Positions 1,916 to 64,000 of a DNA stretch of 64,000 nucleotides are shown one piece after another. How positions within the stretch are numbered: the first letter of the stretch is position 1; each line of letters begins with the position of its first letter. The position numbers were made by a program, and so were the translations under genes. The notes under the pieces were generated by a model. The model worked only from the letters and a program-made list of their open reading frames with translations, made no database searches and was not told where the DNA came from. This DNA is from Rhodosorus marinus CCMP1338 (taxonomy: Eukaryota; Plantae; Rhodophyta): assembly GCA_029953675.1 (NCBI GenBank), contig JAMWBK010000001.1, positions 2,914,001 to 2,978,000 of the forward strand, written 5' to 3'.

Positions 1916-3686
1916 AATTATTCCGACATGTCCGCTAGTAAATCCTTCGCCGCGACTTAGACGATAGGCTAGCATCGAGCAAAACAATAAACTTTGTTTA
2001 ATAAAAACGGTGTTGACTGCCCCGCCCCCAGTCAGCGCGGGCCATTCCCAACCAGTTCTGTTTTGTTTTTTTTGCTCAGCCCCGCTCTGGGCTCATTCTT
2101 TGAACGACTGTGCGTTCCTAGAAGAGGTGAGCTGAGGTCAATACAAGGAGCACATCCAAAACACGAAATCGGGATCCTGTTCCGAGACACAAAAATTCTT
2201 GAACAAGAGAAGATTTGTATAGGATCGGACGGGACCGGACTTTGGTTATCGTCCATCATCACCCCCGTCCGCCCCCGTGCGCTCGTGCCGTAGAGGGCCT
2301 TCGAGACTTTGCCCAAGCGACACGCAAGTCTTTATTTAGCACTTCCGACTCCTACTCTTCTTTTTTTTTTCCTACGTTGTTTCTATCCGACAACAAACAA
2401 ACAAAAAAAACTAAAAAAAACTGCCCGCTCCCACCGCACAATCATCATCCGACCGAGAGCCATGAGGCTCCAGCTAGCTGGGAAGAGCTCTGTCCCAGTC
2501 CGATCAGGACTTCCGTGTTTAAATATTGTTTTCTCGCAGAAAAAGCGAAATCAAGCCAAAGCGTTTAGCAGGTATAGTTAAACCTATGCTAGGCCCATAT
2601 AAGTCAACTATCAGTCTAAAACGATATATTGACTAATATTATATCATTTAATTTTGATAAAATCTAATATCAATCGTTTTACCATCGAAATAGAAATAGC
2701 CTGACAGTGCGCAGGCTACCCAGTCCATACATTTTGAATGTACGCGGTACAATATGTTTTTAGCAAACTTTCTACAAATATTGACGAATCTGTGGCATGC
2801 CATTTTACCCCCCTACAGTTTAGACATTAGAATTATATACAAAGATACGATATATTTATACGTTACCGATGACGTAATTGTTTTTGGCGTGCACATCGCA
2901 CAAGTGGGAACCTGAAATATGGATAAATTTGATGCTGTAAACAAACCCGGGTCCGTGCGGAATTTCAGATTCGGTGGATGGCGATTGGATGAACGGACTG
3001 AAAACTGTCAAGTTTTTTCTTTTTTGTTTTTTTTGAAGGACAAGGAATGACAGTTTCTGTAAACAGAATTGGTAGCCTCGTTTATCTTTGGTAAAATAAA
3101 AAAAAACACGAAAAGTAAGTTTTCCGGGGTGTCGACGAGATTTATTTTACTTTTTGTACAGAAAAAAAATTGAATCGACCACGCAAGAAATAGAAACGAC
3201 ACGATGATTGGATAAATAGTGGGTTTTTGAGTGTTGTGATTGGATTATGTAAAAGATCATTGTATTTTATTTTTAAATAATAGATAGGTTTTTCGGGGGA
3301 CAGTTTGCTTACTATGTAAAATTGATGGTGTTCCCGAGTGATTTCATGTTTTTAGGATAAACTATTGACACTGTAGGATAGCTGACACTTTGATTTTTAA
3401 TCACTTTTGGCGGGCTGGGATTTTCTCCCTTTTATTTGATACTGTTTGTGGGACTTTCAGATATGCGGTGGATTTTGGGGAAGGAGGATGGGTAGGTTGA
3501 TGGGTTGGGGTGATCGATCTGATAGCACGAGGGGTATATAAAGGAGGTGAACGGGTTGAGGAGGCTGGATGGATATCATTGCTTTTGAGTAGGGATTTGT
3601 GGAGAAGTGTGGTTGATGAACTGCGGTTACTAATTACTGAAGATTTGGCGAGGTGGTTAAGGTTGTTGGTGTTTTTTTGAAACAAG

Positions 3687-22140: not shown

Positions 22141-22291
22141 AGAGGCGTTGAAAGGGGGTGAGATGTTTTAGAGTTTTCGCTCTCGGTTTGTGTTTAGTAT
22201 TTTTTTTGTTGATGCTCTGATTCAACTGGTAGAGTTGGAAAACAAGAAGTCTCTTGGTTGTTTGGAAGTGGCGATAGGGAGGAAATTTGAT

Positions 22292-22858
22292 ATGGCGTTT
22301 GTTGCAGGGGTTGGCGGTGGAGTGCCTGCGACAGGGAGGGAGGTTAGGACTTGTGAGAGGAGGGGGGTGATTGTGATGGGCAAAGGGAAGGGGAGTGGAC
22401 GGAGAAATGCGCCTTTGAGAAAACCGAATCAGGCCGGGCCAGAGATTCCGGATGATGGGACGCCTATTTTCACGATTTTGGTGAGGTCGGAGAAGGGGGC
22501 GAAGCTGTGGTATCCCTGCGGAGCCGTGCAAGGGGATAAGAGGTCCAAGGGGCTGGTTGAAGGAATGCAATCATCGTGGGGGAAAGCTCTTTATGGGTCT
22601 GCGCTTGACCGAGGCATTGCGGGAACCGTGTACAAGGACGGAAGTCGTTTTACTGAGAATGCCGTTCGCATGTTTCCAGCTCTGCGAAGTTCGATGAACA
22701 ACTTGCAGTTTGGCTACAGGATCTCGGCGGCCGGTATGGAGACCACCAAGACGAAGCTGATCACGGAGGAAATGGGGATGCCTTTTCTCAAGTGGGTCCA
22801 GTACAAGGTATCATCACAGTTTCAGGAACTGACGGGCCAAAAGGCGCCCGCGCAATAG
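22292..22858 (+). CDS. HHL1: HHL1-like plastid protein (PSII photoprotection/repair family)
   Basis: Transit peptide MAFVAGVGGG. PDDGTPIFTILVRS..LWYPCGAVQGD...GKALY..ALDRGIAGTVYKD..FPALRS...FGYRI matches the HHL1 pattern as I recall it. Confidence 0.65.
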   Translation: MAFVAGVGGGVPATGREVRTCERRGVIVMGKGKGSGRRNAPLRKPNQAGPEIPDDGTPIFTILVRSEKGAKLWYPCGAVQGDKRSKGLVEGMQSSWGKALYGSALDRGIAGTVYKDGSRFTENAVRMFPALRSSMNNLQFGYRISAAGMETTKTKLITEEMGMPFLKWVQYKVSSQFQELTGQKAPAQ

Positions 22859-50511: not shown

Positions 50512-51858
50512 CTATACATTTCCCGTGGTGTACTGGTATATCCATACCGCGCCTCGATTTTCAGCACTAGGTATTGGCCCGGTATCCCTCATCGGGGCGC
50601 TCACCACCAAGAATCCATCCTTCACTGTAACTTTCTTCCCAAAGCTGTCCTGCTCATAGGGAGTCTTCAGCGCTAGAGGCTTGGAAGTGGTCCAAGAGTC
50701 ATCTGAACACCGGACGTAGTGGGAAAACGAACCAGCCCGGTGGGTACCCTTCACCATGTTCCCCCACTGCCCCACTGCGGCAAATTTTCCATCCGTTCCT
50801 AGCCGCTGCCCATGAAGGGCCCTCGAGGTGACCCCTTCTGGAGGGTTGAGTGGCCCCGTCTGTACCCATTTCTTACCAACTTTGCGGTATGCGTAGACCT
50901 GGCCTGTCCATCTCCCCTTATCACTGGGAGCCGTCTCCCCCCCGATCATGATAGTGGTATTGCTCATCGCGATGCCTTCCCCATAGTGTTGTTTACCGTT
51001 GCCAGGATACAGGTCCGATGGGCTCAAAACCTGGGATAGCGCCCATCGATTGCCTTTTCTGACGTATAGATACGCCGCACCTTGCCCCTTCGGTGAATGT
51101 CTTGGGGCCCCTACTAGAAGACGCCTTTCGCCTTCTCCGGGTTCAAAACCATGGAGACAAAGCTCGTCGCCGTAGAACGATACCTCATTGGGGCCTTTCA
51201 AAATCTGGACCAATTTGTATGGGTCACCCACATTTTTCGCGCGGTGGTAGACGTACACTGCCCCAGCTTGTGCTTGCTTCACCCCGCCCCGTGCGTCTAG
51301 TTTGTCCTGGTATCTCGCGCCTACACAAATGAACTGACCTGCAGCTGCTACGCCATAGCCAAACCATGCGCCTCTGTGGCCCCATCCGTTCCCAGGCGGC
51401 AGCAACTGCTGTGTTCTAATCCACTTTCTACCATTGAATACCCAAACGTCTGCGCTTCCAGACTTCTCCCCAGAAGGGTCCGCAAATGGGCGTCCCACGA
51501 TCACAGTCCTCAACGACATCGCAATATTGAGGCCATAATGGTCACCAGGTCTGCGGTCATTCGGCTTGAGAACCTGTTGAAACACCCACGTAGCGTTCGG
51601 GTGTTTCCCTTCCCGGACGAACATATACGCTGCTCCCGCGTACGCGTGCAAACCGTAAGCCCCAACCCCCATGAACTTGCCGCTCATCGCCACGCTGTGG
51701 CCGAAAAAAATGTTACCAATCCTCTTCTGCGCGACGGGGACTAACCTCTGCGGTTTCGAAAGCCGCACACGGGGACATCTCACCGAGTCCTCTCCCGCCG
51801 CGTTCAGACAAAGTCCAAGCCAGACAAGCACCATCCAAAACCTCCAAACTTTCTTCAT
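50512..51858 (-). CDS. Secreted 7-bladed FG-GAP beta-propeller protein, intronless
   Basis: Signal peptide MKKVWRFWMVLVWLGLCLNAAG. Seven repeats of [FYH]G..[VI]A.....VGA.....GAAY.[FY]. No C-terminal TM segment seen. Confidence 0.85.
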   Translation of the reverse strand: MKKVWRFWMVLVWLGLCLNAAGEDSVRCPRVRLSKPQRLVPVAQKRIGNIFFGHSVAMSGKFMGVGAYGLHAYAGAAYMFVREGKHPNATWVFQQVLKPNDRRPGDHYGLNIAMSLRTVIVGRPFADPSGEKSGSADVWVFNGRKWIRTQQLLPPGNGWGHRGAWFGYGVAAAGQFICVGARYQDKLDARGGVKQAQAGAVYVYHRAKNVGDPYKLVQILKGPNEVSFYGDELCLHGFEPGEGERRLLVGAPRHSPKGQGAAYLYVRKGNRWALSQVLSPSDLYPGNGKQHYGEGIAMSNTTIMIGGETAPSDKGRWTGQVYAYRKVGKKWVQTGPLNPPEGVTSRALHGQRLGTDGKFAAVGQWGNMVKGTHRAGSFSHYVRCSDDSWTTSKPLALKTPYEQDSFGKKVTVKDGFLVVSAPMRDTGPIPSAENRGAVWIYQYTTGNV

Positions 51859-53285
51859 CTCAAAACACACAATCAAATCAAAGCCGTTCATCTACAACCC
51901 CTTTCTCACACCATCCCAACCCTCCCCTCCCCCGCCCCTACCGCCATCCGCCTCAACCCTGTCCCCTTTATCCTACCTAAGTATCTCCATCCAATTTGGA
52001 GTCATCCATCATCCAAGTATGACAGAAAACTCCTCTGAAATACAGCTCCAGTCATACGTCTCGAAGTTTTTTCTTTTTTTCATTATTTGCCTGTTCTCTG
52101 TCCCTTCATCTGACTTGACGTATTTCGCTCCCCGCAAACCTATGTAAAAATAAAGAATTATTACCGTTTTGTAGAATATAATTAAAAGGCGAATATCGTC
52201 CCGAAACTCTTTAACCCCCTACTATAGAAATATATTGGTCCAATCAATGTAGTTTTTTTGTATTTAAATATTATATTTGATGGTTTATAGTAGGGGTAGA
52301 AGCTTTGGGAGCTTTTCTTTATGCTGAACGGATGGGAATCATCAATGAAACGGCTACGACGTGGATTTGTTTTTAACTACTTTTACGTCTGGTTTAAGGG
52401 GTCCTTTGGATTTTGGTATTTGGAAAAAAATCTGGGCGGAGTGGACGCTCATCATCTGTGGTTGAAGACAGGGATGGAGAGCTTCTTGGTTGGGCAAGGT
52501 TTGCATCGGCAACGTTCTAGTGGAAAACGTATGTACTCTGTGAGGGTAGCGAGAGTCTATACGCACGACGACGTATCGACCAGCAAAAGTTCGAAAAGGG
52601 TATCCAAATACAAAGTAGATCCCTAAATGCACCAAAACCTCGGTTAGGAATGCGTTTTTTTTTGTCCTTAGCCGATGGTAGGAAACTAGTATTTTGATCT
52701 TCTAACGACGCTCAGCAGTCCAGAACAACTTTAGAAGATTCTGGCCTTAAATCGGGACGATTTCACGCGATTGTACCGATGAAACCCTTCCAACGAAAAT
52801 CGACGGAGGAGGGGGGGGGGGGGTTGGTCCGATAGTGCCACAGTCAGTGGTTGGCAGTGAAGATCCGAACAGTCCCACTGCCGTACACGGAGCACTCTCC
52901 AGCCATCGAATAAAGTGCTCGAATAACCTCTCCTGCAAGGGTGATCCTTTGTAATCCTAGTTCGGATTCGAACAGGTGTCATCCGTAAGAACTTCTCCGG
53001 GAGATTCTCGATTCGTCTAGATCTTTGCCGTCCCTCGTGAACTGTAGGTTTCCTGGTAGCCAGATCTCCATATGAACCCAGACCAGAGCTAGCCAGCTTC
53101 GACCAAAGTTCAAGACTCACGTCATCAAAGCTCGTAGTATATTGTCGAAAGGCGATAAAAATAAAACAAAAAAAAACTCGAAACAAACTCTGCATAAAGC
53201 TAAAAAAAAACTCATCACCAAACTCCTCTCCCCCCCAACCGCCTCCCACCCACCAAGAGCATTGCAAGTGCTGCCCCTGCCTGTG

Positions 53286-53335: not shown

Positions 53336-53857
53336 GGTGACCTCGCTGTCACCATCGAAGAAAAGCCGTCTTGCTAAGTCTGTTGATCATGATGAACATG
53401 CATGCTGTTCCCAATACCCAGGCCTGCTGCGGAATGCCGTGGGGCTGCCGCCGTTGCTCTCGGACTTCACAATGGCGTGAAATACGCGTAGAATTTTATC
53501 CACCCCGGAAGTTCAAGCCTTAACTTTAGCCCATGGCTTGGTACCCTCGGCAATTGAGTGTTTTGGGTCCATGGATTCACTCGGGTTCATGAGCGCACCG
53601 ACCGGCTCTCCTCCCGGTGTACTAGTTTAAGTTTCCTGTTCCCGTTAATTAACGAGCTTAAGATGTTGGAGGCCCGCGCGGTTTAAGGCTTCAGTAGTCT
53701 GGTAGCATGTTTATCCCTCAGGATATCTCCAGTTGGTTGCAATAGCTTCTATTGATGTTGAAAAGAATCTGACAAGTTCAGTCAATAAAGAACACCACTA
53801 ATAGTAATTATTCCTAAACATATAATATATATAATAATTATTCCTCCCCTACCTAAT

Positions 53858-53929
53858 TCCTTCGTAGTCTAGTGGTTAGGATAGCGGTCTCTCACACCGT
53901 TGGCCCGGGTTCGATTCCCGGCGGGGGAA
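53858..53929 (+). tRNA. trnE-CUC: tRNA-Glu (anticodon CUC), intronless
   Basis: Acceptor stem TCCTTCG/CGGGGGA, D-loop AGTGGTTAGGAT, anticodon arm GCGGT-CTCTCAC-ACCGT, T-arm CCGGG-TTCGATT-CCCGG. Confidence 0.95.
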
Positions 53930-53933
53930 TAAG

Positions 53934-54705: not shown

Positions 54706-55981
54706 TTATATTAGCATCTTCGCTTTTCTCGGCCGCTTCGTCTTCTCCACGAAGTAACTCTCCGCATCGGCCGAGGTGACTAGCGCGGCACGCAGTCTCC
54801 GCCCTAGTAAGTACGCAAGGTGGAGCTTATCTGCTGCTTCGACGGCCTCATCAGCGCTGAGGAACTCGATACACGCTAGGCCTAGGTGGTTGCCGTCGTG
54901 CGTTTTGTACCTTTTTACTCCCAATACACTCCCCAGATGGCCAGCGTACTCAGCGATTGTCTCCGGTGACATCAACGCGGGTATCCTACCGACCATGACT
55001 TTCCTGGACGCACCTGCCCCTCTCCTCTCTGAAAACGCAAAGCGTTAGAAGTAGACTTTTTAGATGCTTCAAATAGACAAACTTTAGTGTTCGTACAGAT
55101 CCCAATACGTACCCTCCATGAGCAAGAGACTGATCGTCTCTGGAGGTCTGTAGGTAAAAAGCTCGTCTTTAACCACTGGAGCCGTTTTTATAAATCTCAC
55201 TCCGTTAAGCTCCTTCACTGCACGATCCGCTTGATCCGCTGTTTTAAAAACGGCCTGGGCTCTACCTGTCAGGTCAAGCCAGTGGAAGGGAACCAAAAAC
55301 GTCAACGCGGGCTCGTAGGAAAGCAAACTTCAGTGGGATCTAAGCCGCGGGTACCAGAGTGTAAATCTGTCAACGGATCGAAGTCCAGAAGATCCAGATG
55401 TTCAACTTCACCGACGATCTGAAGCTTCTCAATGATTTCTTCCCTCTTGGAGTTTTTCGGAATGCCTGCAATGTAAACTCGCCTATAAAAAAAGTTCCCA
55501 AGATCGAACCAATGTGGGCAAATCAGAACTGTTGTTTCAGTTTCAACTAAAGGGCTCACACTCACTTTCGTACATCTCCTTCCGGAAAATCAACGCCTTC
55601 ATACACGCTTCTAACAAGCCTTCTATCCTTTGACATGTCCAATTCCAATTGGATTTTCCGCCATTCAAAGTCTTCAATCACTACTCTACTCTGCTGAATC
55701 GGTTTCGTCACGGACACAGTCTTTTTAACATCCATCATCTTCTCCTCTCTCCGACCATCGGTATCTACATCACCAGACAACCAACGTTTCAACTAAATAA
55801 AAACCGTAAAAATTCAATTCAGTCACAAAACTATTTCCTTCAAGAAAACCTAAACCAAACCCCCTCCTCCTCCTCATCAACAACCCAAAAAAAAAAAAAA
55901 CCTTACCCCCTCACCACTAACTCTCACGTGGTGACCCACCCGAGCAGATCGCTGACGAACAAGATGACCAACGTTCAACAT
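54706..55981 (-). CDS. RRM-array gene 1: two divergent RRMs, predicted mitochondrial presequence
   Basis: Exon 1 55981-55907 MLNVGHLVRQRSARVGHHVRVSGEG|LKRWLS. RRM-a RVYIAGIP..GRAQAVF..AVKELNG; RRM-b KVMVGRIP..LGLACIEF...LLGRRLRA. All joins GT-AG. Confidence 0.8.
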
Positions 55982-56284
55982 CTTTCCTTTTCCTAACTAA
56001 ATATTCATTTCATAAAAAAACTCAAATACCTTTTTCTTCAACCATTATTTGCCCGCCTCTCAAGTCTTCCATTGTCATCCCTCAAGTCTTCTATCCACAT
56101 CCCTCTTCGGTGCTCCCTTAAGGGAGGAGACCCCTCATGGAGGAGACCCTCACGGATGAGGGATTCTCTCAAGGCGAAGCCTTGAGAGGGACGGTGGTGA
56201 TGAGTATGGATGTAGAAGAATCCAAGGCTACGCCTTGGGCAGGAAGAGGGCATGGAATGATTTTGAATTTTTGTTTTCTATATG

Positions 56285-57565
56285 TTAGATGTCAGTATCG
56301 TCGTTTGAAATCTCTTCGTCGTCATGGTTTGAGGAGTCGTTTCGCCGTAACGAGGCTTCCAAGGTTCGGGAGAAGGCTCTCATCCCGTCAAGGGCGTTTC
56401 TCGCTGTGACTGCCTCTGCTCTGTTTTTAAATTGGATGTGAAAGTTGCCGGTGGGCCGGCCGGTCTTTGTTCTCTCCTCCTTCACAAAGTTAACCATACC
56501 CACACGCTTGGCTACCCTCGCGACCATCCTCGTGTCGAAGGCTGGCGGGCAGTTTCTGAGAATCAGTTCCTTCTCAAGAGCCCTCTGCACCTCATCTTGA
56601 TTTCCAAGAAGCGGGACGGATTTGTCAGTGGGGATGGAGCAACTCGATGATGGCAGTAAATTTATACCTCGTATCCGAATCTTCTCCTCCATGAATCTTT
56701 TCTCAGGCATCTTCACATTGACTTGTCCAACCGGCGGCAAGATGGTTCTAGCAAGCTCCTTCAAGTTGTAATTGACAGGGCCAAGCTCTCTGGAAACAAA
56801 AACCACTGACTCATCCAGCTTGGTGTTGGAGAGGTACCTCACCGCATCCTTGGCTTCTTCATCGTTGCTAAACTGGACGTGACATGTACCTAATCGTGAG
56901 GACGGACGGTCGTATAATTAAGCACAGCTGAAGGAGATATGAAACTCTCATGAGGAAGAAGACTACAACGCACAGTGTCCTGTCTCTCTCATCATGTCGA
57001 AGTCAATTCTGTAAACGGTGCCGATCCGTGAAGCCCAGGCTTTTATCAGCTGCAGCGACGTTTCCGGGTTGAAGTTGCGCACCTGGACGGTTGCCGTCCT
57101 AATGAAAGTTTTCAGCTTAGGCAACGTCCTCTTTGGCTCCGAACGTGACAGAGCTTCTCTTGGTCTTGGTCCGCAACTTACTGATTAACCTTTGTGAACT
57201 TTGGATGGACATAGTTACGTCTCCCTCCCTGGATGGATCTGAAAGTGGTCTCCTTCCTGGCAATGGAGTTATTTCCGTCAAGCTCAACTCAGTTCAGGTG
57301 ATCCTGGGACGAAGAAGAAGAAGAAGAAGCAGTCGCTTACATATTACGGTCTCGAACATGTTCAACACCCTCAGAGAACTTTTCAGAGAACGACAAGAAC
57401 GGGGTATGTCAAAACCACAAGAAAAATCAGAAGATCGTCTAGGAAGTCACGTCAACTCACCTGACAGAGACGACGGACAGGCACACCACCAGGAGCGTAA
57501 CATCCTACGGTTCTACCTGAAAAAGGTAGTAGCTGTGAACGGAGAAGACCTCGTAAAGATTCCAT
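56285..57565 (-). CDS. RRM-array gene 2: two divergent RRMs, predicted mitochondrial presequence
   Basis: Exon 1 57565-57461 MESLRGLLRSQLLPFSGRTVGCYAPGGVPVRRLCQ. RRM-a TVQVRNFNPE..CHVQFSNDEEAKDAVRYL; RRM-b ELILRNCPP..TGNFHIQF..ARNALDG...RTLEAS. Confidence 0.78.
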
Positions 57566-58771
57566 TCCGATATTCCATCCACTTGCCGTCATCCTTCTCA
57601 ACCAATCGATGTTTCCCGTTCTGAACTTTTAAGCAGCAGTTGCACTTCGGCTACCAGATGAACGACGGAAGCGTTTACCGCATGCTGTGGAAGGCGAACA
57701 ATCTTTAGCTTCTCGAAGATGGATTCTTCATTGTGTACTTTACAGCTGGTCAGTCGGTGAGCCCAAGACTTTGACGCTTCATTTCTTATCGTCGTTCCCA
57801 CAGTGATATAGTCATCGTCGGTGGCTGTGCAACGGGGAGGATGGTCGATCATCCTACAAGTGGGATAGCTTCATAGCAAGTCGCAAGAAGGTTGCGCCTG
57901 AAGAGGTTGCTGGACTCCTGGGGAAGCATGTGTTTTCTTTGTTCCGGCTAACCCAGCAGTATCGCAAGATTCACCGAAGCAACGAAACCTCCACGCTTCA
58001 CCAAGAGTTCAGCAACCTCTGCCGACATGACGACCCCAGAGAGGCAATTTAGGAATTGAAAGGACAGAGCAATGAGAAGGACAGGAGGAGAAGGCTAACT
58101 GCTGCGCGGGATGGAGGTTTACAGATTACTCTTCTCCTTGTCCAAGTTGAAGGGCCTGAGGATGTGGGAGTTACCAAGTAGCGGGCACCTAGCGCTATTC
58201 AATGAAAGTCCCATTCAGATAAAAAGGATAGAATATCCTCTTCATATATGAAGCATGAGTAGCGTAACAAGGGAACATGGAAGCTGTACAAGAAGAAAAG
58301 ACAGTCACGGAATGAACCACCCAAGATTTCGGGCCCCGTGGACCACCGTGCCGTAAAAGACGTAGCTGAAATTGACAATTATGTTGGGTCGAAGCCGAGG
58401 CGGGCCGAAGAGGTTGGTCTCCGTCGGCCTCGAACCCGTTGAGACTCCTGGATCCGTACTGAGACCTATACTTCTGTTCGTATATCAATTGAATACTCGA
58501 CTGTACATTCGTAGTTTATAGCTGAACAAGTACTGCTGGTATTCAGCTGTATACCGAGGTAAAAAAACGGTCTTATGGTATCAACGATTTCGCTAGACTC
58601 TAGACTTGTTCTGCGTAGGGGTCAAATCCAAGCCCTTCTACTGTTGGAGAGCGCGTGGGATAGACTTTCCTGTCATGACCAGACCCCATCGTCTAGCCTC
58701 TACGCTGGGTGATCTGGTCTCGTCACGGGAATCCTGTCTACAGTGATCATCTGAGACAACGGCCGCGAGTG

Positions 58772-60303
58772 CTATCGACTAGCGCTTCTTCTCTTTTCCT
58801 CTTCTTCCTCTTCCGAACGATCCCCCGGTACCCAAAATTCTGCTTGATCGATTGTGTCTTCATCTCTACTTGAACCAATCTTCGTAGGATTCGTCGCCAC
58901 GGTGGATCCTGTCGCAGGCGCCGGTTGCGAGTACAGCCTTGTCTGGTCTGGATTCCCACGAGGTGGGTACTCCGCTGTACTGAATTCCACATCGATGTTC
59001 CCGAACGTCCTCCGCTCCCCCGTTCGCGTTTTGAAGTTGCGAGGTCTGTCAAGGTCAGGGACGTTTGCTTTGGACACGGGCTTTCGTTCAACTGCGCTTG
59101 AGTTGTCATTCCCCACCTCTTTATGAGGCGCCGCACGGCCGGCAGTGGAGTTTGTGAGCTCTACCAACTGCTCTCGAGCAACCGACCTCTTCACAGCTCG
59201 AGTGCTCATCTTTTCATGCATTATCATCTTCCTAGCCCTTTCGCCGGAGACCATCAGATTCTCAAACGCAGTCTCATAATCTCTAGCCGCCAGCTTCCAT
59301 AGTCCAATTCTATAACCATCGCGGAGCCAGTCTCGAAGACGGTCTCTGCTCTTAACATCTTTCATAATGAAGATCGCTCTTTGGATTCTGCTGACTCGCT
59401 CCGTGTAGACTGGTTTCATGATAAACTTGGGTCTGCCCACTGAAGCCAAAAAGTCACGCATCTTATCGTGCTGGAACGGATTCGGAACTCCATGAACGAG
59501 AAGCGATCTGCGTGTCAGCTCGACGTCTGGAATCTCTCCCGTGTCTGCTTTGGAGGAAGACAAGTCCAGTAGTTAGACAGCATGGACGGCTCGGATGAAA
59601 GCGCTTGGTTTTCAAGTTGCTCACAATTTTCTGGGAAGCACAGATCATTGGTAATGGCTGAACATGTTTCAAGCCTGTATTCAGTCAACGTTTTGGGATC
59701 TTTGTAGACGAGTCCCTCTCTGAGAGCTTGACTCGCTGCGTCTTGTGTGGCGTACTCGACTGCAAGAAATCGTTCTACGCTTATATACCAAAAGGGAATT
59801 TTAAGGTTCGGAACGATCGTGGTCGCCATAGCTTTAGCCTTTTTCGTGAGTCGAGGGTGATTACCGTGCGGGTTTTCAACGAGAAAATTGGTGCCGGAGA
59901 ATGCCTCTGCAACACCGACGTACTTTTGCACTCTTTGTATTACATCGTATGGGGTGATCTCCTCAGGAAAATTGATAACCTTTACAACCCTTGGAGTGTA
60001 AGATTTCAAAGAGATTCAGGCGGAGGAAGCAAAAGCTTTTGCATGACTGCCGAGCACTAGCTTTGGTTTACCGTTTCATAACCTTGCGATGCCGGTGAAG
60101 AAGTTCTTCATACTGTCCATCGCAAACAAAAACAGAATCGGCGAATGGATCAGAAGAGCCCAAAAATCCAAGACTTAGAGCCATATCCGGTGGCTTACCT
60201 CGGGGAGTTCATCAGAGTTCAACACGAAATCAATTCCTGAGAGCCTACGCGATAGTCCGATCCCATCGTACTTCCGCAAAGCCCTGCGGAATACTCTCAA
60301 CAT
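58772..60303 (-). CDS. RRM-array gene 3: two highly divergent RRM-like domains, long charged tail, predicted mitochondrial presequence
   Basis: Exon 1 60303-60199 MLRVFRRALRKYDGIGLSRRLSGIDFVLNSDELPE. VVKVINFPEEIT...FLAVEYATQDAASQAL; SLLVHGVPNPF..RAIFIMKD. Confidence 0.68.
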
Positions 60304-60701
60304 CTTTGATCCTTCCGAAGACTAGAGACCAATCTCATCGACGGCGTGTCCATACTCAACGACCAGCTGTTGTAGATTTTCAGACGAACGTAAGGCGACA
60401 TCCTTCCACAATCCCGAAAGCAATGTGAGCAGGACTCACAGCGATCCACTCCATACTTCATCCCTACCTCAGTTTTCAAACTCCTCACATCTCAGCCTCA
60501 TAGATCTGACTCTTGTGCACTTCACCAAACTACTCACCGTGAGAGTTTACAACTATATAATCATTAAAAATCTACGAAGCTTTCAGATACGTTCATACCT
60601 CTCGAACATGCACCCGATCCTATCTCAAATTCGGAAGTTAAGCTCGAACGGGCCTGGAGAGTACTGAGGTCAGGGATGACTCGGGAACGCCAGGTGACGT
60701 A

Positions 60702-61381
60702 TCTTTTGTCTTTTGGTTTTACGAGAATGGACAGTATAGAGCCTCCTCAAAGTGTTGCTTCTTCGTTGGTCTGAATTGATCTCCCATGAAGTTCTCAGTT
60801 CCACTTCTTCTTCAGGTTTATGCAGAGCCTAACTACCCTGAGAAGCGAGATTACAAGACGCTGATGACGCGCGTCTACAAACAAAGCAGCGTTTGAGCGC
60901 CACAGGGTCAAAGAAAGCTCCGTGAGCAGACTATCTAGACGCCCTGCGTCGTTGCGAAAGATACCTCGCAGCCAGCGAGAACCTACACTATCTATCATGC
61001 AGCATTCCCGTCGCTCTTTCGCCGGCGATATTGGTGCCATCTGCTTTCGTTTGCCTGACTTGTCTTTTGTCTTTTGGTTTTATGAGAATGGACAGTATAG
61101 AGCCTCCTCAAAGTGTTGCGTCTTCTTTGGTCTGGACTAGTCTCCCATAAGTTCTCAGTTCCAGTTCCTGCCGTTCTTTCGCCGGCGGTATTGGTGCCAT
61201 CTGCTTTCGTTTGCCTGACTTATCTTTTGTCTTTTGGTTTTATGAGAATGGACAGTATAGAGCCTCCTCAAAGTGTTGCTTCTTCTTTCGTCTGGACTAA
61301 TCTCCCATAAGTTCTCAGTTCCAATTCCTACCGCTCTTTCGCCGTCGGTATTGGTACCATCTGGTTTCGTTTGCCAGACTT
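60702..61381. repeat. 160-nt tandem repeat (about 2.3 copies, 61014-61381) plus a detached partial copy (60702-60803)
   Basis: Unit starts at 61014, 61174 and 61334. Core cttttgtcttttggtttta(t/c)gagaatggacagtatagagcctcctcaaagtgttgc occurs three times. Confidence 0.92.
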
Positions 61382-61946
61382 CAGACCTATTTACAGCTTG
61401 TGACTTCTTTGGCTGTCCCTCGAGGGAACTCTTGTCTGTTTTTCATCATCTCCATGCGTTTCGCAAGGCAAGGCTGAAGCATCGTTTCTTAAAACTCAGA
61501 TTGGTAGCAACTGGTCAATGAACCGAGATACGCAAGCTCAGGTCTCTCAAACTTTCACTGATCCCATCCATCCGTTCACGTCGAACAAGCCTGTAGAGTG
61601 ATGGCTCGAAGGCATCGTCTTGGACGCGTGGAGTTAGGACGGCTTCACGACTTCAGAGTCTGGAGTTTGTGATATTCGGCTGGACTTCAGCTGGAAGACG
61701 ATCTATTGCAGTCCAACCTTGCTCTAGAGTCCCTCAGGCGTATGGAGATATCATTGTTCTGTTGAGTGATTGAGAAGAAGTGCCACTTGTCGCTAACAGC
61801 TGTGAAGGTTGTCAGGGATGGAAGAGGCCAGTCAAGCTTTCAAGAACAGGTTGTCCCGTTTGAACAAGTTGGCCTCAGTTATCTGGTAGGGTTCTTGACC
61901 CTTTCAATATGCTTTACAGTTAGTTTTATCTCTAGTCTTGCCTGCT

Positions 61947-62942
61947 TTAGCTTGCCTGCTGTACTCGTATCGTCCGTCCAAGCTTCGAGGCGAGGTCGAG
62001 CTCGTCGCAAGCTCTCAGCATTTTTTCTCTGCTGGACAGTTCGACGACGACAGAGCAGCCGGTTTCTGTGGATGTTCCGACCCTCTTGATTGATAGTTTG
62101 GTTACGGGTCCGTAGTCTTCAAGCAGTTCCTTCACAGAGCTTTGATCGATGTTCCATGGCAGGTTGTCTATTACTACCGAAGTCAACGGGCTGGGAGCGC
62201 CGAAGTCTAACGAGACAAACAAAGGAAACAGAAAACAACAAGTCAACTTCCCGAGGCAGAGTACGGCAAGTACAGGCATTTTTTGACCATGGATGAGAAG
62301 ATCTACCTTGAACTTGGTCGAGAGACAAGAAAGCAGTTACTTTCAAGCCTTTTAGAGTTGATCCTTGCAAAGCCTTGACAGCCTTCCTCGCGTCCTCTCG
62401 TGATAAGAATTGGGCGTAAACTTGTCCTAAGAAACCATCGATGCGAGCTGCTTTAGATCACGGCTTTCGTCTGCCTCTTTATGAAGCGCGTATCCCGTGT
62501 AGAATACACTTACTTGTTCCACCTTTCTCATCCTCCTTCGTTAGCAACTTCTCGACGCTGCCCACTGAACCAAGCCAAGAAGCAACGTCTTCCTTCGTAA
62601 GCGAAGAAGGTACGTTCCTAAACCACGCCCTCCTACAATCACATCGCCAAACGAGACGATCAGCTCCACGATTCCAAACCGTGGTATTGATTTCAGATCG
62701 CCAATCGTCTTTCCTCACCTCTCAAACTCTGAGCCCTCAATCTGGCTCTAGGTAGATCAAGAAGCAGTCATGACATAAACACAGACCCAGGTTTCTTAAG
62801 CAACTTTCACCTCTTCAACAGACATCTTCCCCACGGCTCTTACCTGCAGACACATCCATCTCAAACCACCAACACGATGGATGCGCGTCAATCCTGCTCT
62901 CAACGGCTCTCCATGACGAGCAACGCCTCTCATCAGATTCAT
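61947..62942 (-). CDS. RRM-array gene 4: two divergent RRMs, predicted mitochondrial presequence
   Basis: Exon 1 62942-62844 MNLMRGVARHGEPLRAGLTRIHRVGGLRWMCLQ. RRM-a RAWFRNVPSSLTKEDV..QVYAQFLSREDARKAVKALQG; RRM-b SVVIDNLPWNID..VVVELSSRE...GRTIRVQ. Confidence 0.8.
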
Positions 62943-63431
62943 TCTCCTCCACTTGGAATCAAAAAGAAGCTCAAAGTCTCCAGCTCAATGGAAACCGACG
63001 ACGGCTGCTGCGGAGCGGCTAAACGTAACACCCACCCGTGAAATGAAGGACGGCACGCCGCTCGCAAACCCTCACGGAGAGGTGGGACAAACGCATTCGT
63101 CTAGCGGAAACCTACTGACAGCTGCTGCGAAGCAGCAACAATTAGCTTGGACGAAAAAAATTGTCATCTTCTTTGAGATATTTTTGAGAGGCAGGCCAGT
63201 GAACGAGCTTCTTTCTCTGTGCTTTGGGTCTACTACCCAATGCCATAGACTTAGGTATGTGAGACGTATGGTGCTGCTTCTAAAGCTTCCCCCCCGTTGG
63301 GATATTGACGGCGATTGATCAAGTTAGTACTTGGGTTTTTGCATGCGGGATTGGTCTTTACATGGACGTGCTAGCGAGCCAGTCCTATTGCCCCGTATTC
63401 ATGCGTAGAGTTTTGTCTACGAGAAAACAGG

Positions 63432-64000
63432 TCAGACAAGTTCGTCCTCTGGCAAGGTGAGCGTTCTGTCTCTCTGATCCTCTCTGATGAGCTTCGCTTC
63501 GTCGAATTCCGTGGCAAGCATACATCTAACTTTGACGCCGCTTAGCTTCGCGTTGTCGAGCCTAGCGGCAGCAAGTTTAGCTCCCTCAACGGATCGGAAC
63601 TTGATCACTGCTTCAATGCCAAGATGTGCATTACGTTCGCCGATAACGACAGCGCACGCGAGAGGGGCGATGGACCTCCCCACGTCCTTGAGGTCTTGCC
63701 ACTCGACATGTGGCGGAACGTTGGTCAGGCGAACGGTTTTCGGGTCCGCAGTTGGACCTATCGCTCGCATTTCTAGATTTCCAGAATAAAACGGGTTTCA
63801 ACATCAGCTCAGCGGTGTCAATAGCTCGTCTGTTCTTCATGGGGACACGTCTTGAGTTCAAACCCACCTTCAAGATTGTCGCGATCTTGTCTCATGAAAA
63901 GACGGGCCCCCATAAAATTCTGGTAACCTAGCGTTGCAATCGCCTTTTGAGCAAATACTTTATCCGAGTACTCGACAATTGCGCGACCTACATGGAGATG
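63432..64000 (-). CDS. RRM-array gene 5 (5' end outside the window): at least two RRMs, Gbp2/hnRNP-M-like
   Basis: GRAIVEYSDKVFAQKAIATL..FMGARLFMRQDR, an intron, then TVRLTNVPPHVEWQDLKD..EAVIKF..AAARLDNAKLSGVKVRC. Stop at 63432. Confidence 0.8.

Follow-up and report, generated by a model that had tools for sequence, protein, structure and literature searches.

Gene models and transcripts of the array

Investigation of a 64,000-nucleotide (nt) stretch of the genome of the red alga Rhodosorus marinus CCMP1338 (assembly GCA_029953675.1, contig JAMWBK010000001.1 of 3.81 Mb, positions 2,914,001 to 2,978,000 of the forward strand; hereafter the window) revealed five minus-strand genes, here named A to E (NDN08_005710 to NDN08_005714), which encode proteins with an N-terminal extension followed by two divergent RNA recognition motif (RRM) domains. 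Three more paralogs (F, G, and H) are located just past the window end on the same strand, so that the array comprises eight consecutive genes, and these almost certainly represent a tandem-duplicated double-RRM family in R. marinus. An earlier note on this DNA, made from the sequence alone, had proposed at least five head-to-tail genes on the minus strand; all five exist, with the coordinates given there except for the start of gene B, and the count of members past 64 kb that it had suggested added F, G, and H and brought the total to eight. The GenBank product names are 'hypothetical protein' (A to E) or 'RRM domain-containing'. The models of genes A to E were obtained by six-frame reading and enumeration of splice sites, with GT-AG introns of 72-114 nt, and the genes of the array are as follows:

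54706..55981, minus strand: gene A, NDN08_005710, 301 amino acids (aa), identical to KAJ8909011.1; introns 55906-55793 (phase 0), 55565-55483 (phase 2), 55354-55266 (phase 1), and 55112-55029 (phase 1)
56285..57592, minus strand: gene B, NDN08_005711, annotated as 300 aa, model guided by the transcript protein P0171; introns 57460-57379 (phase 0), 57340-57257 (phase 2), 57181-57099 (phase 2), 56973-56890 (phase 1), and 56667-56596 (phase 1, in the linker)
58772..60303, minus strand: gene C, NDN08_005712, 397 aa, with P0183 99% identical to the hand model; introns 60198-60113 (phase 0), 60071-59990 (phase 2), 59864-59775 (phase 1), and 59624-59545 (phase 1)
61947..62942, minus strand: gene D, NDN08_005713, 208 aa, hand model identical to KAJ8909014.1; introns 62843-62748 (phase 0), 62718-62633 (phase 2), 62513-62427 (phase 1), and 62306-62207 (phase 1)
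63432..64000 and on to window-equivalent 64329, minus strand: gene E, NDN08_005714, 237 aa, identical to KAJ8909015.1; introns 64076-63988 (phase 1) and 63867-63773 (phase 1)
L001:3613-8281, equivalent to window 64662-69330, same strand as A to E: paralogs F, G, and H
Beyond the window end, same strand: gene F, NDN08_005715, 422 aa
Beyond the window end, same strand: gene G, NDN08_005716, 260 aa
Beyond the window end, same strand: gene H, annotated as 217 aa

Gene A encodes, in this order, the N-terminal extension, a unique region of roughly 70 aa, RRM1, the linker, and RRM2. The exon chain of gene B was set by P0171, a complete-open reading frame (ORF) protein of 295 aa from another strain in the MMETSP collection; the resulting model has 300 aa and a total intron length of 405 nt, both as annotated, although the exact deposited sequence was not recovered. 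Regarding the coordinates of gene B in the earlier note, the 3' end at 56285 stood while the start at 57565 did not, this being the second methionine codon; the annotation and the transcripts start at 57592, 27 nt upstream. Gene C is the most degenerate member in the window, its long C-terminal tail being helical and disordered, and gene D contains a micro-exon of 29 nt. Only the 3' two-thirds of gene E lie within the window. For gene H the exact annotated sequence was not recovered; the annotated start is an ATG at L001 position 3613 (MPDGAAVLQ...), out of frame with an ATG at 3644, from which a family-like N-terminus, MLRVLARRSVRLYGGFSRSCSVVP, is read and joined to RLKLNTLP, also giving 217 aa, and the deposited model of H may thus have a wrong first exon.

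Expression was established for genes A to E, each of which has a transcript-derived protein in other R. marinus strains (MMETSP and JGI). Transcript-derived sequences of other strains agree with the exons modelled for B, D, and E, including those that encode the N-termini, and the junction CFPEN/YTGEIPD of gene C is borne out by the transcript P0184. Splicing and start codon of gene D are borne out by the MMETSP proteins P0005 and P0175 and by the cDNA contig L003, and the model of gene E by the MMETSP complete ORF P0012 and by the contig L004. The JGI cDNA contigs L002 (A; 1074 nt, from another strain, encoding an orthologue of 299 aa), L003 (D), and L004 (E) contain no introns, carry the spliced ORFs, and have an in-frame stop codon upstream of each start codon; the N-terminal extensions of A, D, and E are therefore the true N-termini. 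The N-terminal exons, which the earlier note had wished to see confirmed by transcripts, are thus present both in transcript-derived proteins and in cDNA contigs.

Between strains, the ratio of nonsynonymous to synonymous substitution rates (dN/dS) from the motif of the N-terminal extension (see below) onward is 0.29 for A, 0.21 for D, and 0.17 for E, and these three genes are under purifying selection. Decay into pseudogenes is ruled out by the intact ORFs, the transcripts, and the dN/dS values of 0.17-0.29. A single long fused gene is likewise ruled out, each unit having its own start and stop codon. The earlier note had treated the units as separate genes and had named transcripts fusing them as evidence to the contrary; the ORFs are separate, though some transcript assemblies span neighbours. 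The Trinity assembly Transcript_6105 carries the ORFs of both C and B, and L003 (1-1175) spans the spacer between E and D (window 62943-63431) followed by the complete ORF of D; the first ORF of L003 corresponds to the C-terminal extension of P0015, a variant of E of 352 aa that reads past the usual stop codon. These neighbour-spanning transcripts look like read-through or overlapping untranslated regions rather than gene fusions.

A further observation regards the third intron of gene C (59775-59864), which lies before strand beta-3 of RRM1 and is open in frame over 30 codons without a stop codon. P0184, a transcript-derived ORF from another strain, begins inside the equivalent of this intron, which suggests that it is retained in some transcripts.

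RRM domains, common descent and relatives

Two stretches above the gathering threshold of the Pfam family RRM_1 (PF00076) were detected in A, B, D, E, and H (with RRM_1 scores of 50 bits for A, 64 for D, and 68 for E), while F has one such stretch, G stays under the threshold, and C lacks any Pfam match. The second domain of C, encoded by the last exon, was modelled by AlphaFold as beta-alpha-beta-beta-alpha-beta with a predicted local distance difference test (pLDDT) score of 70-85 in the core, and its top 50 matches in a Foldseek search of the PDB were all RRMs; in the full-length AlphaFold model, the elements of domain 1 follow one another in this order too, at low confidence (pLDDT 56-71). 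Two divergent RRMs per gene, as the earlier note had read them, are thus found by Pfam in A, B, D, and E, and by AlphaFold and Foldseek in C, where domain 1 is of low confidence. The last position of the ribonucleoprotein motif 1 (RNP1) is usually Phe or Tyr.

Pairwise identity among the eight paralogs is 15-30%, and all eight can be aligned collinearly over the N-terminal extension, RRM1, the linker, and RRM2. Each of the eight genes has a phase-1 intron two to three residues before strand beta-3 of RRM1; seven (A to G) share a further phase-1 intron, which is placed in the linker and in most cases about 10-25 residues ahead of RRM2, and genes A to D have a phase-2 intron one residue before strand beta-1 of RRM1. 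When the domains of the family are compared, the best match of an RRM1 is mostly another RRM1 and that of an RRM2 another RRM2, with exceptions. Kinship by raw similarity, whereby a paralog would resemble the other paralogs more than it resembles generic RRMs, was not borne out by the domain scores: those of generic RRM proteins against the paralogs equal or exceed those among the paralogs. Common descent is indicated instead by the shared introns and their phases, the collinear layout, the features and motif of the N-termini, and the tandem order on one strand, and the best explanation of the array is repeated duplication of one gene that encoded an N-terminal extension and two RRMs of the Gbp2/Hrb1 type. 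The same evidence upholds the view of the earlier note that this is an old, clustered, and diversified double-RRM family; the possibility it had held against this view, that each gene is the orthologue of a different known RRM protein, found no support. The array is a clear case of tandem duplication followed by extreme divergence in which intron positions and a short N-terminal motif were retained.

Regarding relatives in other organisms, when E and C were each searched against a collection of 5.8 billion proteins, all matches came from Rhodosorus; a concatenated query of the five proteins (1214 aa) gave no match in the same collection, a result that is uninformative since their own sequences are contained in it. 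A search of 1.84 billion representative sequences with the family profile gave 25,170 matches, of which the best 150 were Rhodosorus members or their strain orthologues and generic multi-RRM proteins, for example from the dinoflagellate Cladocopium. The generic matches bear the signatures WQDLKD, GRSKG, and VREDRE of the Gbp2/Hrb1 (hnRNP M-like) type. No orthologue outside Rhodosorus was identified, with the limit that the true members C, G, and H rank below the best 150, so that remote red-algal orthologues could be missed. Three of the generic matches stood out in a side observation: P0096 (328 aa; L005:1785-2771, Logan SRR30952016) combines an N-terminus of mitochondrial appearance, MFRLLALRYSQASISRRVV..., with three Gbp2-type RRMs behind it, and the N-termini of P0065 and P0164 look mitochondrial too. 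Organelle-targeted Gbp2-type RRM proteins may, to judge from these N-termini, exist in other eukaryotes.

These signatures survive in part in E (EWQDLKD, MRQDRD), F (SWENLKD), and H; A, B, C, D, and G have lost them. E, F, and H resemble yeast Gbp2 and Hrb1, hnRNP M, and MYEF2 in the xWQDLKD stretch of helix 1 of RRM2 and in the RQDR- or VREDRE-like end of RRM1, and the Gbp2/Hrb1-type and Rhodosorus proteins alike have an RNP1 without the classical aromatic residues. Proteins of the Gbp2/Hrb1 type, however, have at least three RRMs together with RGG or SR regions, shuttle to the nucleus, bind mRNA, and have no extension resembling a targeting peptide, whereas in the Rhodosorus family the number of RRMs is exactly two, the N-terminus bears a basic extension, the sequences have diverged to an extreme degree, and the genes are arranged in tandem. 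In the eight proteins no RGG or SR repeats were seen; F has a spacer rich in Arg, Asp, Glu, and Pro.

In the PDB, the family profile matched Pab1, nucleolin, and Nop4, and the RRMs of Hrb1 as well. Among proteins consisting of two RRMs only, the best end-to-end match was spinach cS22 (PSRP2), with 77 bits in one stretch over both RRMs; HuR, HuD, and Sxl score at the same level, and gene product D alone matched cS22 with an E-value of 5e-4. Like the array, cS22 and the chloroplast ribonucleoproteins CP29A, CP31A, and CP33 are encoded by nuclear genes and have a targeting-like N-terminus followed by two RRMs. They differ in belonging to the green lineage, in their location in the plastid, and in not being arranged in tandem, and the similarity to them is no greater than that to ELAV or Sxl. 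Chloroplast ribonucleoproteins have canonical RNP1 motifs of the KGFGFV type, and they contain an acidic domain, of which the Rhodosorus proteins have none. Different members of this small multi-gene family bind different sets of organellar RNAs (PMC7460601, PMC7154868).

The class of proteins to which the earlier note had likened the array, comprising plant ORRM, mitochondrial glycine-rich RRM proteins, human SLIRP and GRSF1, and the mitochondrial RRM proteins of trypanosomes, is targeted to organelles and acts on organellar transcripts. ORRM and SLIRP have a single RRM and GRSF1 has quasi-RRMs, and RIP or glycine-rich partner domains occur in this class, unlike in the Rhodosorus proteins. 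No specific sequence similarity to proteins of the ORRM/SLIRP/GRSF1 class was found in any search made, and the comparison with plant ORRM proteins is weakened, the nearest sequence relatives being nuclear-type Gbp2/Hrb1-like RRM proteins instead. The helical-repeat families PPR, OPR, and HPR are lineage-specific expansions of nuclear genes for binding of organellar RNA and are tied to unusual organellar expression; their fold is unrelated to that of the RRM, and their likeness to the array is one of analogy only.

N-terminal extensions and possible mitochondrial role

Features of presequences were assessed by simple residue counts and hydrophobic moments, a heuristic and not a trained predictor. 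The first 20 residues contain four to seven Arg or Lys and at most one Asp or Glu in seven of the eight proteins, amphipathic segments are present, and C, E, G, and H (the last in the rebuilt model) start with MLR[VC]. A motif of the form [RK]-[RWK]-[LM]-[SC] was detected at positions 15-40 in seven proteins (RWLS, RRLC, RRLS, RWMC, RWLS, RRLS, and RKLC), including the following four in the window:

55775..55789, minus strand: KRWLS motif of gene A, aa 27-31, candidate cleavage site, unchanged in the orthologue P0027
57464..57475, minus strand: RRLC motif of gene B, at the end of exon 1, unchanged in P0171
60238..60249, minus strand: RRLS motif of gene C, aa 19-22
62850..62861, minus strand: RWMC motif of gene D, aa 28-31, unchanged in three strain variants

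The R-2/R-3 pattern marks sites cut by the mitochondrial processing peptidase and Icp55, and in all seven proteins the motif is compatible with this context (R-x-[FYL]-[SA]) and is a putative cleavage site. Between the strains compared, the motif is constant. The part before it has an identity of 62-81% in A, B, and D, against 85-93% for the rest, and a dN/dS of 0.4-1.7 over few sites, and evolves faster than the part after it. Faster evolution of a stretch that ends in a fixed motif is what one would expect of a targeting peptide whose cleavage site is under constraint. The motifs listed in the earlier note (KRWLS, VRRLC, SRRLS, and LRWMC) are all present and are compatible with the R-2/R-3 context; its description of the N-termini as Arg-rich and poor in acidic residues applies to A, C, and D among the complete genes of the window and less well to B, which has two Arg or Lys in the first 20 residues.

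The window also contains a gene with an N-terminus of another type:

22190-22858: HHL1-like protein, starting MAFVAGV, with the Phe-type start of red-algal plastid transit peptides

In plants, HHL1 is located in the chloroplast. The M-x-F-V start that the earlier note had ascribed to plastid genes in this window is thus seen in the HHL1-like protein (MAFV), and none of the eight N-termini of the array has such a start; Phe occurs at position 5 in C and at position 2 in F, in Arg-rich contexts in both.

Rhodosorus marinus belongs to the class Stylonematophyceae and has a minicircular mitochondrial genome, which was reported together with the nuclear genome (PMC10250338). The mitochondrial DNA is highly divergent, with genes located singly or in pairs on minicircles and few tRNAs encoded, the halves of nad5, which come from two circles, are joined by trans-splicing, and the rRNAs have diverged so far that barrnap and RNAmmer do not detect them (PMC10250338). 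The mitochondrial genomes of the Stylonematophyceae contain only a handful of introns (PMC10250338), so that the appeal of the earlier note to organelle genomes rich in group II introns does not suit this class. A mitochondrial function of the array is worth testing because the mitochondrial DNA is minicircular, trans-spliced, and highly divergent.

In the proposed mechanism, the basic N-terminal extension of 15-45 residues would be a cleavable mitochondrial presequence, leading the protein via the TOM/TIM23 route into the matrix, where the processing peptidase would cut at R/K-[RWK]-[LM]-[SC] (an R-2 cut) and one further residue would be removed (the R-3 pattern). The mature double-RRM proteins would then bind mitochondrial RNAs, and the diverged paralogs might differ in the transcripts they act on or in the step they carry out (for example stabilisation, processing of RNA ends, trans-splicing, or association with the ribosome), in parallel to the two-RRM chloroplast ribonucleoproteins of plants that serve plastid RNAs (PMC7460601, PMC7154868). 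Judged from sequence features, this mechanism as a whole, with a duplicated family, a mitochondrial presequence, and a role in mitochondrial RNA metabolism, appears about evenly balanced between being right and being wrong.

Several points weigh against it. Gene product B has only two Arg or Lys in its first 20 residues (two to three basic residues in the first 20-30), H has no motif and an uncertain start codon, and mitochondrial transit peptides are rarely predicted even on genuine mitochondrial ribosomal proteins of R. marinus (PMC10250338), for which reason the rules for presequences in this alga are poorly known. By sequence, C and G can hardly be identified as RRM proteins, with weak hhalign matches to the family profile (E about 0.004). 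Positions 3 and 5 of RNP1 are mostly non-aromatic (for example GRAIVEY, TRQVYAQF, and LGIEAVIKF), and RNA binding is only a prediction because most of the RRMs do not have the canonical aromatic residues. Furthermore, the nearest sequence relatives are RRM proteins of the Gbp2/Hrb1 type, which are nuclear and cytosolic.

The proteins could be nuclear or cytosolic and of the Gbp2/Hrb1/hnRNP M kind, with the basic N-terminus serving as a nuclear localisation signal or a regulatory element. This agrees with the multi-RRM character and the WQDLKD, GRSKG, and VREDRE signatures of all the non-Rhodosorus proteins among the best 150 of the 25,170 profile matches, with the scores of about 40 bits of the domains E_1 and H_1 against Gbp2-type proteins, above those against any paralog, and with the presence of Hrb1 among the PDB matches of E; RRLS is also a consensus for basophilic kinases. 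A phosphorylation site is, however, at odds with the Cys in place of Ser in three of the seven motifs. Also against this reading, the extension occupies the very beginning of the protein, contains almost no acidic residues, has amphipathic character, and changes more rapidly than the mature part does, with the motif itself fixed, and none of the eight proteins has the RGG/SR region or the third RRM of Gbp2/Hrb1. A nuclear or cytosolic location is considered fairly unlikely; if it were correct, the array would be an ordinary lineage-specific expansion of Gbp2-like RRM genes. Plastid-targeted two-RRM proteins, as counterparts of the chloroplast ribonucleoproteins or of cS22 (PSRP2), would share the architecture of a targeting peptide followed by two RRMs and the organisation as a multi-gene family, and the cS22 matches given above (77 bits for the profile and E = 5e-4 for D alone) would fit; yet HuR, HuD, and Sxl score about as well as cS22, so that the match reflects architecture and not specific kinship, and no acidic domain lies between the targeting peptide and RRM1. 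Arg occurs within the first 3-10 residues and the M-x-F-V Phe motif of red-algal and glaucophyte transit peptides is missing, while the HHL1-like protein in the same window, whose family is plastid-located in plants, does have it, and targeting to the plastid is quite improbable.

Within mitochondrial targeting, two narrower possibilities arise. As structural components of the mitoribosome, the proteins would compensate for the divergent rRNAs, which escaped detection by barrnap and RNAmmer (PMC10250338); cS22 is a precedent for a two-RRM protein in an organellar ribosome and the degenerate RNP motifs of most of the RRMs would suit a structural role, although eight fast-diverging paralogs with no orthologues detectable elsewhere would be unusual for ribosomal proteins, and this sub-case is highly improbable. 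Alternatively, the array could be an invention of the Stylonematophyceae that coevolved with the minicircles, each paralog being dedicated to the expression of minicircle genes, possibly by recognising transcripts of the conserved cassette or constant region, maturing RNA ends, helping to trans-splice nad5, or supporting the highly divergent rRNAs; this is distinctly unlikely, and, if true, it would be a third independent case of a fragmented organelle genome with its own expanded set of RNA-binding proteins, after kinetoplastids and dinoflagellates, here made from RRM domains and with the original tandem array still intact.

For red algae, nuclear factors dealing with organellar RNA appear to be little known. 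Literature searches found neither an organellar RRM family described in red algae nor the array itself, and the genome paper, in which 'RRM' and 'RNA-binding' have zero occurrences, does not mention the array (PMC10250338). Should the proposed mitochondrial presequence be real, the array would provide eight candidates for the expression of one- or two-gene minicircles, the trans-spliced nad5, and the very divergent rRNAs, and would indicate that an organelle RNA-binding toolkit can be based on RRMs rather than on helical repeats. Organelle-targeted RRM proteins are already known; the array would be an independently derived case, combining two Gbp2-type RRMs with a mitochondrial-type presequence, in tandem and in a lineage with minicircles.

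Surroundings of the array

The array is bordered by an EamA gene on one side, beyond which a DUF2358 gene follows, both on the opposite strand, and by a tRNA-Glu gene and a gene for an FG-GAP protein on the other:

53857-53930, plus strand: tRNA-Glu (anticodon CUC), about 0.8 kb downstream of gene A
50512-51891, minus strand: ORF of an FG-GAP repeat protein, 459 codons, without introns, with a hydrophobic N-terminus

With a hidden Markov model of the family (16 domains), no further RRM segment was detected in positions 1-54705 of the window or in the far flank (73 kb examined), and the regions upstream of the eight genes share no common 8-mer. The deposited product of the FG-GAP gene begins at the second methionine (448 aa). 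Within the array, the spacer of 1.6 kb between C and D contains a tandem repeat of 160 nt at 61012-61381, present in 2.3 copies with 93% matches.

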